Below, piece after piece: positions 25,262 through 33,761 of a stretch of DNA of 64,000 nt. The notes under the pieces were generated by a model, which searched no databases, was not told the origin of the DNA, and was given only the letters and a program-made list of their open reading frames with translations. The position numbers and the translations under genes were made by a program. How positions within the stretch are numbered: the first letter of the stretch is position 1; the number at the start of each line of letters is the position of its first letter. Source of the DNA: Zygnema circumcarinatum SAG 698-1b (taxonomy: Eukaryota > Plantae > Zygnematophyceae); the NCBI GenBank assembly GCA_037447605.1, contig CM074804.1, positions 3,387,909-3,451,908 on the forward strand, written 5' to 3'.

Positions 25262-25689
25262 ATACTCAACAGTATTACTTGTGCTAGCGCAACTGTGTAC
25301 CGTCGTCAATGCAGTCCAAAGAAAAAGAAAATTAAAAGGCACCCCTTAACAGGACCTTGTAGTCATGAAGAGCGTCCTACACGACTACTCTACAACCCTA
25401 ATTCGCGGCGTTTGGCGAGAACAAGAAAGCACAAGAAGAAGCGAACCTTACACAGTCGACTATGAAGGCAGCAGAGAGAGCGTGGCTTGAGAGGATGCGT
25501 TGCCGCGGCCCCGCCCACACGTTGACGAGGAAGGCGCCGTCCCTCAGCCGCTCTGCTGGGGGGGAGGAAAGAAGCTCTCGTCTTCGCGGCCCAGAATTGG
25601 CGGCCGCGAGGACCCTCCTCCTCGCCGAGGGGGACTGAGGGAGGTTCTTTGGCAGCGGGAGCGGAGCATCGTAGTCCCGTCAAGTAGCC

Positions 25690-28600
25690 ATGGTTTCCGA
25701 TGCTGCCAAGAAGAAGGCAGCTGCAAAGAAGACTGCTGCAGCTGTGAAGCGAGGAGCAGTGAGCACTGGCGCCAGGGCACATGTCTCTGGAGGTGCCGCT
25801 GCATCGACTAAGCACACAGTTGAGGACTCGGTGTCAGATAAGGTGGCTGACGCATTGCCGGGGAAAAATCAGTCTCGTTCTGTTAATTCGCTTAAAAGTT
25901 TGGCTGAAACAGGGGGCAATACTACAAGGATACATTTCAAGTACAGGGAAAGAAGCGTTTGTATGCGGGCCTGTAAAATTTGGTTGCTGGCGCCGATGGT
26001 TCTGGACCCAACCAAGCTGAAGGAGTTCGTTGAATTGGTGGTCTGTAAGTTGCACCTGGCAAGTGTGGGCGAATTCGTTGCTTGAAACTGCTGTATTGAA
26101 AAAAGTTCGGCCTGTTTTGCAGTCAAATACAGTGCAAGCTTTATCTACCAATATTAGTACCGACAATGCCGAAACGGAAAGGCGAATGCTTGCGGATAAT
26201 ATAAATCGACTTACCTTTCCACCAAATTTAACCGCTCGACAGCGTGCTATACTGCATGGTACGTTTCGTCATAGAGTGTGGCCAACCGGAATGGCAAATG
26301 CCATAATAAAAGCGGTGGCTGGGAAAAGTGCAGTTACATTTTTCAACAATGTTATTGAAAGTAGTAAATGAAGAATCAACTTGTAACGTTCATTATCCCT
26401 TCATGGACTATTCGGCCGGTAATTATCCATGTTAGACAGATGAACTAGAAGTATCAAAACCCTTTAACATACCATGCACTTGGCAGGAAACATGTGTGGC
26501 AAAGTGTAGTTAAGTCCTGGTTTTTTCAGTATGGCTAGGTCTTCCGACTCAGCATAATTGCCAAATCTGAATCGTATGCCGAATGTTCTTGCTTGAGTCT
26601 CATTATCGCATGGTTGGGTTTTTGGATTGTAGGTTTAACATGTGTGCCACTAGATCTCGACTTGGACATAACTTAGACTTGGTGCAATGCAAGACTTGCA
26701 ATGCAATGCGGACTTGTTCCATATCACTTCAACAAACCCATCCTACATCCTAACCTTCCAATCCATTCTTTTATTTTTTTCCATTCCCACAGACTTTGCG
26801 GAAACTAGCGGATTGAAGCATACAAGCGTCGGAGACACCGAGGACACGCGAAAACTTGTAATCTGGAGAGATGGAGAGGAAGGAATGACTAAAGCCTTGC
26901 AGTCTGATTCTTCCACGATAACCATGGGAGAGCTTGCGGAGATGATCAAGGAGCACCTGCATGTTGACACAACACCGCTACTTCAGATGGAGGAAGTTAT
27001 CGTGCCTGAACGAAGACAGGAAAAGAATAAAGCAAGTAGTGGTAGAATTGCCACATTTGGAAGTGGTACAAAACAATTGTTGACGCGGGAGGAATTCGTA
27101 TCCAAGATGGGCCCTTTAATCAATTTAGAAAGGGTCAGTAACGACTCTAGACGAATCCTATCTTGTTCGCCAAACTAAAATCAAAGGAATGACGTTGTGT
27201 TTGCTCGTTTTTATCACGGAATTTAACCTACAATGTGGTACGTAAGGATGCATGTTCCTTAGAGCCTGGAATCCAGTGACTGAACCGCCGCCTGTAAAGG
27301 AACTTGTAGCTGAAATGGCTTCTTAGTTTCGCTGCACGCAGTGCAATCATGATCTTTCTGCACCTTGAGAAGTTTCTCGACAAGGTTTTGACAATCGTAA
27401 CGGCACCTGCTTCATTCAGCTTGCCTGTAGGTGAATATTTTCTAATGACATATTGTAGTTTGTTTCTTATTTTTTATTTTTTTTTCCGTGAATCTTGATA
27501 TGTTTGAATTGACCTTTTGTTGCTGTCTGCTAGGATGCAGAAATATCTGCTTCCACGGAATCCACTGCGTTGCTGAAGCCGGAAACTGCTCAGAAGAGGG
27601 GTCGGACTCTTCTCAACTTAAAGTGTACTGATGCAGAGGCAGGCCTCTTTGGAAAAACGCTCATAGTTCTGAAGCCCAACAAGAGTGAGCTTCTCCCACC
27701 TCACAAGTTCACTCCACGCGACGTGGTTTCCATTAAGCCCAACAAGGCTGAGTCCAGTTCTCCTCCGATCGGACAAGGCGTTGTGTATCGAGTGCGGGAT
27801 GGGGCCATTACTGTCGCTGTGGACGATATGCCAGAAGAGGGTTTGGACGTGCCACTACGAATTGAGAAATTGGCTAATGAAGTCACTTATAAGCGCTTGA
27901 AGGTATGCTAGGACTGATCCCTCCTTTGTCTGGTCGTGTCACCTTAGAAACTGTCGTTTGTTCGTCCCAGGAAGCAAGCAGCGTGTGAACTAAGTCTGCT
28001 TGCTTTATAGCTTGTGAAAAGCAGACATGTTTTCCATTCTGCGCGTTTGGAAATTCTCAGTGGCAAACTTTGGCTTTTGTAGGATACACTCTCCGAACTG
28101 GCGAAAGGATCCATTAAGGGCCCAGCCAACGACCTTGTGCCGGTGTGTCTCAGTTACCAGCTGGTTTTTTTTCTCTTGCGCTTAGGACATGTGAATGGCT
28201 CATGTTTCTGCCAGCAGCTCTGCATTTACTGCAATTGCTCAGAATGAGATAAAGAGTAAGCCACTAGTGCTGAGGAAACCCCTGGAAAAGCTTGATATGA
28301 TAAGCATCGCAGTTTCAAACCAGGCTGCACCGGAGGAAAGGTTAAGTCTGTGTATGAGAATTGTTTAAGTGATCTCAGCCGTGAGATTTCTTGTTAACAG
28401 GTTCTTTTTGGCGAAAGACCGCCAACTTTTGCCAAAAGGCCTCCGGAATTCAGCCCGTTCAATGGAGGTCTTGATCATTCTCAGCGGGCTGCTGTCACTA
28501 AAGCGCTTGCAGCTGCTGACGTTGTGCTGCTGCACGGCCCTCCAGGCACAGGGAAAACCACGACTGTGATCGAGGTTAGCCCTACTTGAGGCTCACCTAA

Positions 28601-31600
28601 CGTTCAATCAATGGGAGTCTTTGGCTATACAAAGTCGACCCCGGATTGGCGGCTGCGTACACATATTTATCCTCCGCCTTGCAAAGATAGATTGTGATTA
28701 CTTTGTTTTGGATTGTGAAGTGATTGCAAATCTCAAGGGGGCTGAAGACAACGAGTCTGCAGTACTAGAAGTCTTACGGTGACTTCTGACTTGAATTGAA
28801 AGTTGCCAAAAGTTGTGTATCGTAATGCCGTGACCTTGAGAATTCTTAGAAATGTGTGGGAAACACAGTTCCAACCCAAGTTTCCTTCCCTGCATGCCGC
28901 CCACAGTCGGTGCTGGCCGGCATGGCAGGTGATCCTGCAAGAGGTAAAGCGCGGCGGCCGGGTGTTGGTCTGCGCGGCCTCCAACATCGCAGTGGACAAC
29001 GTGGTGGAGAGGCTGTCACGTCACAAGGTCCGCCTCGTCCGCCTCGGCCACCCGGCGCGCCTCCTTCCGTCGGTCCTCGCCAGCGCCCTCGACGCGCAGG
29101 TGAGGCCTCTCCTCCCTCCCCCTCCCCTCCCCTCCCCCTCCCCCTCCCCTCCCCTCCCCTCCCCCTCCCCTTCCCCCTCCCCCTCCTCCCCCTCCCCCTC
29201 CCCTCCCCTCCCCTCCCCTCCCCTCCCTCCTCCCCTCCCCTCCCCTCCCCCTCCCCCTCCCCCTCCCCTCCCCTCCCCTCCCCTCCCCCTCCCCTCCCCC
29301 CTCCCCTCCCTCCCCCTCCCCCTCCCCTCCCCCCTCCCCCTCCCCCTCCCCCTCCCCTCCCCCTCCCCCTCCCCTCCCCTCCCCTCCCCCTCCCCCCTCC
29401 CCCTCCCCTCCCCCTCCCCCTCCCCCTCCCCCTCCCCCTCCCCTCCCCTCCCCCCTCCCCTCCCCTCCCCCTCCCCTCCCCTCCCCCTCCCCTCCCCCTC
29501 CTCCCCTCCCCTCCCCTCCCCCCTCCCCTCCCCCTCCCCTCCCCTCCCCCTCCCCTCCCCTCCCCTCCCTCCTCCCCCTCCCCCTCCCCTCCCCCCTCCC
29601 CCTCCCCTCCCCCTCCCCTCCCCCTCCCCTCCCCCTCCCCTCCCCTCCCCTCCCCTCCCCTCCCTCCCCCCTCCCCTCCCCTCCCCTCCCCTCCCCCCTC
29701 CCCTCCCCCCTCCCCTCCCCTCCCCCTCCCCCTCCTCTTCTCTCTTGTCCTCATCTCGACTGACTTGTTTGAAGGGGCAATAGCCTTTGCAGTACCTGTC
29801 CATCTGCAGTGTGCGTCTCTGGTGGTTTTTTTCTAATGATGAGTTGTTCCTCTCACGAGCTTTGGAGGAACTCATTGTTTGCATCGTTTAAGGATCTGCT
29901 TCGTTCAGTTCCTCCTCTTTGTCCTGCACCAGTGAGCGTTGTTTTAGATGCTGGCGATTTTATCCCTCTAGGTTAAGGTTAGGTTTTGGGTTACGGCTAA
30001 GGGCTCAGGGTTAAGGACTAGTGTTTGGGTGTAGGGTAGGGTTAGGGTTAGGGATAGATGTCGAAGGGTTTAAGGATTAGGGTGTAAGTAGAGTTTATCG
30101 TTTAGGGTTAGGGTTTAGGGTTCAGGTTTAGGGATTTGGGCTTGGGTTAGGTTTAAACTGTAGAGTTAAGGTTAGGATTTAGGGTTTAGGGTTTAGGATT
30201 AGGTTTACATTTACGGTTAAGTGTCAGGTCGATTTTAGGGTTTAGAGTTATGGTTAGGGTTAGGCTGAAGCATAGGATTTAGCGTTTAGAGTTTAGGGTG
30301 AGGGCCTATGGTTTAGGATTTGGGGTTGAGGGTTTAGGGATTAGGGTGTAGGGTTAGGATTAGGGTCAGGACTCGGTTAGTTTAGTGTTTATGTTTTGGT
30401 TAAAGTCTAGGCTTTAGGGTTGAGGGTTCTGATTTATGGTTTGGGTTTTGGTTTATGGGTTCATGGTGAGGGTTAGATTTAGGGTTAGGCATTGGGGTTT
30501 AAGTTTTAGGGAAATATGTTAGGGTTTAGGGCTAGGGTTAGGATCTAGAGAAGGGTAGAGTTCAGAGTTTTGGGTAAGGTTAGAATTTAGAGTTAGGATA
30601 GGGATAGGGTTTAGGTTTAAGGGTTTTGGGTCAGGGTTTAGGGTGAGGGACTAGAGTTTAGGGTTTGGGTTCTTGGTCGAAGGGTTTACGGTTAAGGTTT
30701 CGGAATAAGGAAGGGTCAGGACCAGGGTTTTGCGTTTTGGGTCAGGGTTAGGGTTTGGGTTAGGATTGATAAGTGAGATGGATTTGGCATTGATCTCGAG
30801 ATCAATGATTGATAAGTTCATTAATAGGCAAAATGGGCAGATGTGCATGTGGACATAACTGTGGGTTTTGAAGGATGGTCAAAGGGAGGCCTTTGTCCTC
30901 CCAGGATAATTTTTTCTTTTTTTTTTTTGTTTTATATACCATCTATTCTGCTGGCAGCTATGCCTTCAGCTTTTGATGCAGTGTTGCATTATCAGTGTGG
31001 TTTTCAGCTTTTCCTTCGGAAATAGCCAAACCGATCGTTTATCGCGTTCAGGTGCTGAAAACGGACAACAGCGCTTTGGCCAACGACGTGCGGAAGGAAA
31101 TGAAGCAGATAAGCAGCAAGCTGCTGAAGACGAGGGACCGCCGAGAGAGGGGGGAGCTGCGAAGGGAGCTGAAAAGGCTTGGAAAGGAGCAGCAGCAGCG
31201 GCAGCAGCAGGCAGTTGCTGACGTCATCAAAGACAGTGCTGTGGTGTTGACCACTTTGACGGGAGTCTTAACTCGTCAATTAGAGGTGAGGGAGGGAGTG
31301 GTAGAGAGCTCTGATACGCACTTTGCCATCTGTAAAGCTAACGTAGTTGGCAATCTCAAATTACTTCATGTCTTCAGTGGAACAACTCTTCAATATCTGC
31401 TGTCTTCCTCTGCAGGTTAAGTGTTAGACTCTTTTTCTCTGATGGACTGCCCTCGTTGTTTCAATCACAACAGCTTGCATGTAAATCCACTGCAGAGCTT
31501 ATTGCTTCACCTCATTGCGGTAGATGTTATGCAACTGAAGTCCATGTCACTGTTTACATACCCATGTCTGAGTGATTCCACCATGCTTCACTTGAGAGTC

Positions 31601-33761
31601 TCCCATTCCGACACAACAAAAACCTCATACTACCTTTCTTGCCACTCTCCACGACAGTACCCAAGAGCAGACCAACTACCTCGACCTTGCCAATGACACA
31701 CCTTTCTCCCGTAAATCCTTATCTGACAACCATACTGAACCTCACACCAACGGCTGCCCCTCCCCCCTCCCCCCCCTCCCTCTCCCCTCCCTTCTGCCCC
31801 TGCTCACAGGGCACCACCTTCGACCTGGTGGTAGTGGACGAGGCCGCGCAGGCCCTCGAGGCGGCGTGTTGGGCCGCCCTCCTGCGGGCGCGAAGGTGCC
31901 TCCTCGCGGGGGACCACCTCCAGCTGCCGCCCACAGTGCAGAGCAAGGAGGCGGAGAGGGAGGGCCTCGGAGTCACCCTCTTTGAGCGTCTCGCCACCTT
32001 GTTGGGGTCAGAGGTGATTTCCTGGATGATGCTGTTTACCGAGAGGTTTGTTGTCAGGGAGTGCAAACCATGTTGTTGTATTTCCTGGGGTCTGTAGTCA
32101 TGGAGTCAGGCAGTGAGTGTGGATATGCAGCTTCTGCGAAGTGGCATGGATTGTAAGAGTGAGCGCCTTCTCCTGAGTCAACCGTAGGTGAGTTTTGGAA
32201 GGAGGTCAGACTGGTTGGAACTTGTTTGATAGCTGTTTTCTGTGGAAAATCGTGTGTACTGCATGGAGCCTGTTTCACGAGAGCTTTAGTCAAAACATTC
32301 GAATTTAGGAGTGTAGTTGCTAATAAACTGGAGACATGCTTGAGAACCATTCGTGTGTGAATGTTTTTAAAGTTTCAAAGTAACAATGTTAAGATTGATT
32401 GGTTTCAGTTCTAGAATTATTCCAAATCTTAAGCCAGTGTCTGTTGAAATGCCCTGTGGAGGTAACTGGGCGCACACCTAAACTTGTTGTGCATGTGCTT
32501 GGCGCAAGTTTAGTGAGCCTCATGGCTTCCGGTCCTTCTCAAATTCCTTCTTTACGATTCCAGTCTGAAGGAATTTCCAAAATCGCAGTGTGTAGTGTGG
32601 CAAGCATTAGCTTTGAAGAAGGAGATCGCTGTAGAGTCATTGACACTTTGAGCTATATAAAAGGTAGTTTTCTTGTATGGCTTGCTTGGAAACAGCGCTT
32701 TGGTCTCGGCTTGTCCAAGTGTAATTGGCTATGTTTCTCCACTTGCGATAACTTTGACCTCTTACATTGGCTTCTTGCAGGCCACAGCCATGCTCACAGT
32801 GCAGTATAGAATGCACGCTGACATCATGCGCTGGTCATCTGAGGAGCTGTACGACGGAAAGGTCACTGCTCACAGCAGCGTTGCCACGCACACTCTCACT
32901 GGTTTGGAGGGCGTGAAGGACAGCTCAGCAGCCACTCCTGTGCTTGTGGTAATTGACACGGCAGGCTGTGATATGGAGGAGTTGATGGAGGAGGAGGGAG
33001 ACAGCAAGCAGAATCCGGGAGAAGCAGCGGTGGTAATGGAACATGCTCGAAGGCTAATAGCTGCTGGGCTCAACGGCGGAGATATCGGCATTATCACGCC
33101 CTATAGTGCTCAGGTATAACCATCACAATGTAAACTGTAGACCAATGTGGGGCACGCAGCGGCCCCTGTCTCATTTATGGATTTTCAGGGTCTTTCTCAT
33201 TTCATGCCTAGAGTCTAAGCCAGTCGGACGGAACTGGAACTCGATCTACATGGTTTCTGTCTGTTAAGAGGAGATACGGGTGTGCCATTCTGCTGCAGGT
33301 TGGCCTGTTGAAGGAGATGCGGGCGACCGAGCCAGGGCTATCAGGAATTGAAATCAGTACTGTGGATGGTTTCCAGGGGCGTGAGAAAGAGGCAATTATT
33401 ATCTCCATGGTTCGATCCAATGATTCGGGAGAGGTAGGTGTCATGATCAAAGATTTTGAACTGCAAAGCTTTTATACAACTCTCTCGTTATAAGTCACGA
33501 AGACCTCCCTTGTGTGGCATCTTTCCAGCAGCTTCCTCGTTGATCTGAACATGAGTAGGTCTGTTATGTCGATGGGAGTCTTAGCAGGTTGGATTTTTGG
33601 CGGATAATCGTCGTATGAACGTGGCTGTCACGCGCGCTCGGAGGCACTGCTGCCTCGTCTGTGACAGCGAGACAGTGGGGTCCAATCCGTTCCTCAAGCG
33701 GATGCTCACTTACATGGAGAACCACGGGGAGCTGCTTAGCGCTATGGAATACGTGTCGTGA
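25690..33761 (+). CDS. SMUBP-2/IGHMBP2-type SF1 (Upf1-like) helicase with an N-terminal R3H domain and a putative ABCF1-like leader
   Basis: Helicase motifs: [13 protein letters not shown] (Walker A), [66 protein letters not shown] and NVAVTRAR. The plant SMUBP-2 start ([15 protein letters not shown]|DAEI..ETAQKRG) is preceded by the R3H motif [16 protein letters not shown]|[21 protein letters not shown]. The leader exon is [14 protein letters not shown]. Helicase and R3H are firm; joining of the leader exon is inferred. Confidence 0.85.
29104..29740 (+). repeat. C-rich (CCCCT/CCCTC)n low-complexity tract in an intron
   Basis: About 640 bp of nearly pure C/T starting 4 nt after the donor CAG|GTGAGG at 29100. 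Confidence 0.9.
29968..30766 (+). repeat. Degenerate interstitial telomere-like repeat (TTTAGGG/TTAGGG) in helicase intron 29100-31051
   Basis: Many exact and variant units, e.g. gggttagggttaggg and tttagggttagggtttagggttcagg, over about 800 bp. The G-rich strand is the sense strand. Confidence 0.85.

Follow-up and report, generated by a model that had tools for sequence, protein, structure and literature searches.

Introduction

In humans, IGHMBP2 is a disease-associated helicase (SMARD1, CMT2S), and how its R3H domain cooperates with the helicase core is, to our knowledge, not understood; a helicase of this type, Hcs1, is also present in yeast, where it is not known to have an R3H domain. 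In mouse Ighmbp2, the R3H domain brings about approximately 10-fold tighter RNA binding (lower Kd) and a 4-fold higher RNA-stimulated ATPase activity, and Lim et al. draw a parallel with the CH domain found N-terminally in Upf1 (PMC3505976), while the R3H domain of human Smubp-2 has been solved with a bound 5'-monophosphate nucleotide (2lrr). In the animal-type proteins compared here, the 1B domain begins at residue 8 and R3H follows only at about residues 716-776, with zf-AN1 behind it (Pfam); the initial annotation of the locus, too, had R3H C-terminal to the helicase in animal IGHMBP2.

The gene described below lies within the window (the whole 64,000-nucleotide stretch of Zygnema circumcarinatum DNA that was analyzed) and encodes the parts in a different order: a K/A-rich leader, R3H, a linker that is probably disordered, the 1B domain of SMUBP-2/HCS1 type, AAA_11, AAA_12 and the stop.

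Gene Structure and Transcript Evidence

Assembled contigs from four runs, each belonging to a different study of the window's organism, were mapped to 25500-29050, and the ends of exons 8-12 were set by tblastn of the transcript protein P0297 together with GT..AG sites. The resulting features are as follows (splice joints are written as the bases on either side, separated by a slash):

25690-33761, + strand: IGHMBP2/SMUBP-2-type helicase gene, 12 exons, 827 aa
25690..25842, + strand: exon 1, K/A-rich leader including the start codon, 51 codons (joint 25842/26123, GT..AG, four of four runs)
26123..26258, + strand: exon 2, first half of R3H, the R3H part being about 26180-26258 (Pfam half match, A1 alignment)
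26259..26792, + strand: intron 2, 534 nt, GT..AG (joint 26258/26793, four of four runs from four studies)
26793..27133, + strand: exon 3, whole (joints 26258/26793 and 27133/27534 in transcript contigs)
26793..26866, + strand: exon 3 part a, remaining half of the R3H core (aligns to P0181/P0297 and to the R3H domains of algal homologues)
26921..26986, + strand: exon 3 part b, helical extension of the R3H fold (motif D..L..L[IL]..HL.[IL]D, conserved from chlorophytes to the window gene)
26987..27088, + strand: exon 3 part c, linker, probably disordered (both length and sequence vary across A1)
27089..27133, + strand: exon 3 part d, helicase start (profile match to 4b3f/4b3g, land-plant N-termini)
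27342..27426, + strand: minor cassette exon in intron 3 with an in-frame TGA (joints 27133/27342 and 27426/27541, runs X2, X7)
27534..27902, + strand: exon 4, SMUBP-2/HCS1 1B domain (Pfam PF21138; joints 27133/27534 in three runs, 27902/28083 in four)
28083-28142, + strand: exon 5 (joints 27902/28083 and 28142/28401, four runs each)
28401-28574, + strand: exon 6 (joints 28142/28401 and 28574/28929, four runs each)
28929-29099, + strand: exon 7 (joint 28574/28929, four runs)
31052-31285, + strand: exon 8 (P0297 tblastn and GT..AG)
31810-32013, + strand: exon 9 (P0297 tblastn and GT..AG)
32781-33113, + strand: exon 10 (P0297 tblastn and GT..AG)
33299-33433, + strand: exon 11 (P0297 tblastn and GT..AG)
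33588-33761, + strand: exon 12, stop TGA 33759-33761 (P0297 tblastn and GT..AG)

The coding sequence amounts to 2484 nt (827 codons and the stop). The transcript contigs match 25500-29050 without any mismatch and all of the main joints are GT..AG; a contig of 905 nt consists of exons 1, 2 and 3, and another of 1084 nt of exons 2-6. Because of these joints and spanning contigs, the intron splitting R3H, which interrupts the domain one base past the His codon (the full codons of exon 2 end at 26257), is real, and R3H and the helicase reside on one mRNA, as which the window gene is spliced and expressed. This bears out the initial annotation, which had R3H split by intron 26259-26792 and its second half sharing exon 26793-27133 with the helicase start; in the translation of that exon, about 75 residues lie between the two. 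The annotation had, however, placed the start of exon 2 at 26133, where the transcripts give 26123 (joint 25842/26123 in all four runs), and its span was devoid of the upstream exon 1 (25690-25842), which supplies the start codon; for annotation purposes, the first three exons are to be treated as part of the helicase gene.

The leader encoded by exon 1 also opens the orthologue P0297 and the Closterium proteins P0015 and P0178-P0180, and 68 of its first 72 coding bases match the transcript of the relative. Upstream of the gene, the contigs of that relative have an aldose 1-epimerase gene that is not present there in the window. Apart from the cassette exon, whose in-frame TGA was read off the sequence, an alternative acceptor at 27541 is used in runs X2 and X7 (joint 27133/27541).

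Helicase Core and C-Terminal End

Exon 4 matches the family-specific 1B model PF21138 with an E of 6.5e-18 (65 bits, the cut-off being 27), and each of the core exons, when searched one by one, matches AAA_11 or AAA_12: exons 5-7 (28083..29099) encode the stalk and the first part of AAA_11, including Walker A GPPGTGKT, and exons 8-12 (31052..33761) encode the remainder of AAA_11, with motif II DEAAQ, and AAA_12, the translation of which contains motif VI VAVTRARR. As the window exons and P0297 are also placed by the tree in the streptophyte part of the SMUBP-2/IGHMBP2 family, adjoining the embryophyte clade, the gene is, judging by its sequence, an IGHMBP2/SMUBP-2/HCS1 helicase (Upf1-like SF1B) that is predicted to possess unwinding and ATPase activity.

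The frame closes at TGA 33759-33761 directly past motif VI/AAA_12, and the orthologue P0297 terminates at the same residue. Neither a C-terminal R3H nor a zf-AN1 was found, as the C-terminal halves of the animal-type proteins P0066, P0126 and P0150 match nothing else in the window; the earlier claim that the gene stops after motif VI with no R3H behind it is thereby upheld, and its architecture is not the animal-type IGHMBP2 one, in which R3H and zf-AN1 are C-terminal.

Identity of the R3H Module

Split as it is by intron 2, the domain is hard to score from the genomic exons: exon 2 alone yields a half match to Pfam R3H (PF01424; E 0.07, 13.6 bits against a curated cut-off of 26.8 bits, profile positions 12-35 of 60), exon 3 alone yields no Pfam R3H match, each half being too short to score, and neither of the two exons searched singly against the PDB retrieved anything meaningful. 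The stand-in was therefore the closest orthologue, P0181 (768 aa), along with a longer form of it, P0297 (830 aa). The transcript contigs that encode them are uninterrupted and belong to another organism (SRR8128902/4/5/6); identity to the window exons is 74% over 810 aligned residues. P0181 scores 33.3 bits with Pfam R3H (E 5e-8) at residues 13-65, ahead of 1B, AAA_11 and AAA_12, and its R3H is identical to exon 2 at 15 of 19 positions. In the Pfam check proposed in the initial annotation, AAA_11/AAA_12 were matched by the window's own exons, while R3H gave a half match below the cut-off in exon 2 and a score above it in the orthologue. Together with the transcript-linked exons, this upholds the central claim of the annotation, namely that an R3H domain precedes a SMUBP-2-type helicase.

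Across the 15 N-terminal modules aligned in A1, the window gene is seen to retain all six of the nearly invariant columns of the R3H region (P, Q, G, H, S, R), the G, H, S and R columns being held by exon 3 part a; the defining R-x3-H is present as R-A-I-L-H closing exon 2, where it is aligned with all of the homologues and with 1msz. The AlphaFold model of P0181:1-160 (pLDDT >88 over residues 21-110) is a strand-helix-strand-strand arrangement followed by an extra strand and two helices (84-95 and 100-108, pLDDT ~90), a disordered stretch at 115-130 (pLDDT <50), corresponding to the linker region, and the first helix of the helicase. The R3H fold (three-stranded sheet and two helices) is, accordingly, seen in the model of the orthologue. 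Foldseek searches with this model had 2lrr and 1msz as the top PDB entries (probability 1.0/0.99, TM 0.61 by target), together with FAP1 and SPAG7, and the ESM Atlas neighbors of the P0181 module were R3H clusters without exception, while the ESM Atlas feature search with the R3H module gave no usable match. The motif D..L..L[IL]..HL.[IL]D is the helical end of the extended R3H fold rather than a separate element. As modeled, the module would comprise the R3H core and a conserved helical extension, approximately 90 folded residues in all, with a presumably flexible linker of about 35-70 residues.

Distribution among Green Algae and Land Plants

A HMMER search with exon 4 (1B) against 1.84 billion representatives gave 440 matches, in many of which 1B begins 150-230 residues into the protein. 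When N-terminal R3H was scored by Pfam and a local green-R3H HMM, it was found in Closterium sp. NIES-68, Naga37s-1 and NIES-64, in Auxenochlorella protothecoides, Tetraselmis sp. and Polytomella parva, in several metagenomic clusters that are likely picoplanktonic green algae (one of them with 32 members) and, in a damaged form, in Spirogloea muscicola and Tetrabaena socialis. The layout thus spans Chlorophyceae, Trebouxiophyceae, Chlorodendrophyceae, Zygnematophyceae and metagenomic algal clusters; it is common to chlorophyte and streptophyte algae and is the usual algal form. The public Spirogloea model seems to be mis-spliced at the position matching intron 2 of the window gene.

No R3H was found in the ~650-aa orthologues of Ceratodon, Marchantia, Riccia, Calypogeia, Pteridium, Juniperus, Cryptomeria and Amborella, nor in about 100 angiosperm orthologues, At2g03270 type included, which extends to all sampled land plants what the initial annotation had stated for Arabidopsis only. 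In these proteins, a short basic leader is joined straight to the helicase start: the moss, liverwort, fern and seed-plant orthologues have lost R3H and the linker while keeping the leader. The R3H-less land-plant proteins form one clade in the maximum likelihood tree (100/100), outside of which the window exons and P0297 group near Spirogloea, followed by Closterium and, further out, by the chlorophytes; a constraint uniting the window gene with mosses and liverworts was rejected by the AU test (p 0.00044). The simplest reading, for a sampling of chlorophytes, Zygnematophyceae, mosses, liverworts, ferns and seed plants, is that the ancestor of the green lineage already had R3H at the N-terminus and that the domain disappeared a single time on the stem leading to these land plants, which would be a clear-cut loss of a domain close to the emergence of land plants. 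A word-based search with the N-terminal 160 residues of P0181 returned only the query itself, a result that reflects a module too divergent for the tool and does not imply absence.

The rarity implied by the initial annotation is, therefore, not seen, the layout having been found in several green algal classes and metagenomic clusters; its own proviso, that the architecture might already be widespread and annotated in green algae and bryophytes, largely holds for the former, with R3H even precomputed by Pfam for the public Closterium proteins, but not for the sampled bryophytes, which lack the domain. Still, the algal R3H-first proteins are filed as hypothetical or unnamed, and the layout is not described in the literature found on R3H helicases/IGHMBP2 in plants and green algae, which makes it a database-visible, yet undescribed, variant of a known helicase.

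Relationship to the Animal R3H Domain

A profile built from the green N-terminal modules and searched against all PDB sequences retrieved the R3H domain of human SMUBP-2 (1msz/2lrr) with an E of 1.4e-11 and 48 bits, while the next best solved R3H domains, FAP1 (E 0.47) and SPAG7 (E 1.8), both remained below 15 bits, and none of the other solved R3H chains (PARN, 1whr and KhpB in the Foldseek list) reached an E of 10. The last segment of the same profile aligns to residues 3-25 of the human SMUBP-2 core (4b3f/4b3g). The single orthologue sequence likewise had 1msz as its best PDB match (E 0.0023), and the local green-R3H HMM detects the C-terminal R3H of the animal-type proteins P0150 and P0066. 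The green R3H would thus appear to share its subtype with the R3H at the C-terminus of human IGHMBP2, in a comparison that encompasses few solved families and a domain of 50-60 residues.

The same R3H subtype is, then, encountered at opposite helicase ends, and relocation of one domain (e.g., by tandem duplication, fusion and trimming) is therefore favored over unrelated captures, as far as can be judged from these profile comparisons. The initial annotation had left independent recruitment and permutation side by side; it is the latter that fares better here (48 bits versus fewer than 15 for the other solved R3H domains). The comparison was made between green plants and animals, and no direction is assigned to the permutation.

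Discussion

The window gene is, with good probability, an IGHMBP2/SMUBP-2/HCS1-type SF1B helicase in the green-ancestral R3H-first layout, the green and animal forms being permuted versions of the same partnership. The more specific scenario, in which one ancient R3H-helicase partnership was circularly permuted (R3H coming first in the green lineage and last in animals) and then lost once on the stem leading to mosses, liverworts, ferns and seed plants, stands at roughly even chances. By analogy with the animal protein, the green R3H would be a tethered module for binding single-stranded nucleic acid (its 5'-phosphate end), which would raise RNA affinity and, hence, RNA-stimulated ATPase activity, as it does in mouse Ighmbp2. 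With so long and flexible a tether, the module might act whether attached in front of the helicase core or behind it: the disordered linker would join R3H to the helix leading into 1B, putting the module in the place that the CH domain takes in Upf1. The animal and green layouts would be permutations of a single ancestral partnership rather than separate inventions.

Whether R3H was instead captured separately, in front of the helicase in the green lineage and behind it in animals, the likeness of the two being convergent or generic, has to be considered, as the domain is small and mobile (its partners include G-patch, SUZ, DEAD and RRM), the green R3H domains score just 22-34 bits with the general Pfam model, and the fungal-type and land-plant orthologues indicate that the helicase works without it. 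Such independent recruitment is nevertheless unlikely in view of the 48 bits with which the green profile recognizes the SMUBP-2 R3H, as opposed to fewer than 15 for FAP1 and SPAG7, the detection of the animal C-terminal domains (P0150, P0066) by the green-R3H HMM and a Foldseek top match that is, likewise, SMUBP-2. A common ancestor with two R3H domains may also have existed.

A different question is what the module does, and a mainly regulatory or protein-docking role, by which it would gate 1B or recruit a partner as the Upf1 CH domain does, is suggested by its position N-terminal to 1B, the very place of CH, by the R3H-CH comparison of Lim et al. (PMC3505976) and by a conserved helical extension that lies outside the 60-position Pfam R3H model. 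The conservation of the R-x3-H residues and of the G-L-x-H-x-S-x-G stretch, common to the nucleotide-binding human domain, nonetheless makes docking as the main role rather improbable, and nucleic acid binding remains the preferred reading. As for the gene itself being an artefact, i.e., two adjacent genes (one for a small R3H protein, the other for a helicase) read as one, or a leader exon that is foreign, the minor premature-stop isoforms at the exon 3/4 boundary are what might raise such a suspicion; yet one exon encodes both the second half of R3H and the start of the helicase, contigs from independent studies each cover exons 1-3 or 2-6 in one piece, and the same continuous protein, leader included, is found in the transcripts of the relative and in Closterium genes, leaving this explanation a negligible probability.

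What remains of interest is a kingdom-level permutation of one R3H-helicase pair along with its undoing in land plants: the same type of R3H, at the opposite end in algae and dropped in land plants, amounts to a natural experiment on position and tether. If permutation and single loss are both true, R3H would serve as a tethered anchor for RNA ends whatever its position, and green algae would supply a natural “swapped” version for testing how R3H stimulates the SMARD1 helicase.

Comparison with Known Systems

The part order of the window gene is shared by Closterium GJP51811.1 (NIES-68), the Naga37s-1/NIES-64 products, Auxenochlorella RMZ52214.1 and the proteins of Tetraselmis and Polytomella, among which those of Closterium even open with the same leader, although these algal R3H-first proteins are just 57-61% identical to the window gene and the Closterium linker has long low-complexity inserts. 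The land-plant SMUBP-2 (At2g03270 type; in Marchantia “ATP-dependent RNA/DNA helicase IGHMBP2”, 654 aa) is orthologous in its core, 63-68% identical, and shares the start motif (L)E(E/Q)FVS.M.PLI.LEK, but carries only a basic leader of 20-45 residues, without R3H or linker, and belongs to a separate 100/100 clade. Upf1, too, is an SF1B helicase (Upf1-like) in which an accessory domain precedes 1B; that domain (CH) is, however, a zinc-knuckle Upf2-binding module whose fold is unrelated to R3H.

With human and mouse IGHMBP2 (4b3f/4b3g for the core, 1msz/2lrr for R3H), the window gene shares the 1B domain (PF21138), AAA_11/AAA_12, the N-terminal helix (residues 3-25) and, apparently, the R3H subtype (E 1.4e-11). 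It differs from them in having R3H ahead of the helicase, where that of IGHMBP2 lies about 70 residues behind it, in having no zf-AN1, and in adding a conserved R3H extension (a beta-strand and two helices) and the K/A-rich leader.

The leader in the 5′ portion of the helicase gene

The helicase gene opens with a leader ([20 protein letters not shown]) whose conservation, when the window is set against the transcript of the relative (the other organism, whose contigs L002, L003 and L004 encode a 74% identical orthologue, P0181/P0297), lies far above that of its other parts: the opening 72 coding bases match at 68 positions, compared with 72-79% identity elsewhere, and the agreement extends to synonymous sites. 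The Closterium proteins (P0015, P0178-P0180) have the same N-terminal start, and the leader is a genuine spliced portion of the gene; the constraint upon it may reflect an RNA element, a targeting signal or ABCF1 sharing.

Conserved leader and its neighbour in the relative
Window 25690-25761; L002 1544-1615: conserved leader of the helicase gene, also the N-termini of P0015, P0178-P0180 and P0297
L002 211-1290, minus strand: aldose 1-epimerase gene, head-to-head with the helicase and ~250 nt upstream; also in L003 and L004

The aldose 1-epimerase gene, uninterrupted in the relative's helicase transcript contigs, has no counterpart in the window, and the helicase neighbourhood is therefore not conserved.

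Introns 3 and 7

Transcript contigs reveal minor isoforms where the R3H module adjoins the helicase portion, at intron 3 (window 27134-27541), and those of X7, one of the organism's four transcript runs, show only minor forms at this boundary. These isoforms may represent unproductive (NMD) splicing or a route to an R3H-only product.

Features of introns 3 and 7
27236, plus strand: extra donor, intron 3
27342-27426, plus strand: cassette exon in intron 3, with an in-frame TGA
27541, plus strand: alternative acceptor of intron 3, 7 nt downstream, shifting the frame
29106-29735: (CTCCCC)n tract in intron 7, ~630 bp
29971-30671: degenerate plant telomere-type repeats (TTTAGGG)n in intron 7, ~700 bp

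Intron 7, 1952 nt long, holds two repeat stretches, of which the (CTCCCC)n tract yields long Pro/Ser "proteins" in ORF finder output and the (TTTAGGG)n one is an interstitial telomere-like tract within a gene.

Representation in public protein sets

No entry for the window's own helicase was found in the large protein collection searched, the only close entries being two transcript-derived proteins of one other organism, and annotated public protein sets seem to lack the form of the gene that this lineage carries. The public model of the Spirogloea muscicola orthologue (P0006, SM000124S25966) passes at residues ~50-65 directly from FPPSLTARQ to LAEAAKEHGL, without the R-x3-H piece, at the counterpart of window intron 2, a gap that probably stems from a mis-called splice site. 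The missing piece is likely why Pfam R3H is unrecorded for this protein, whose R3H scores 32.6 bits with a local HMM.
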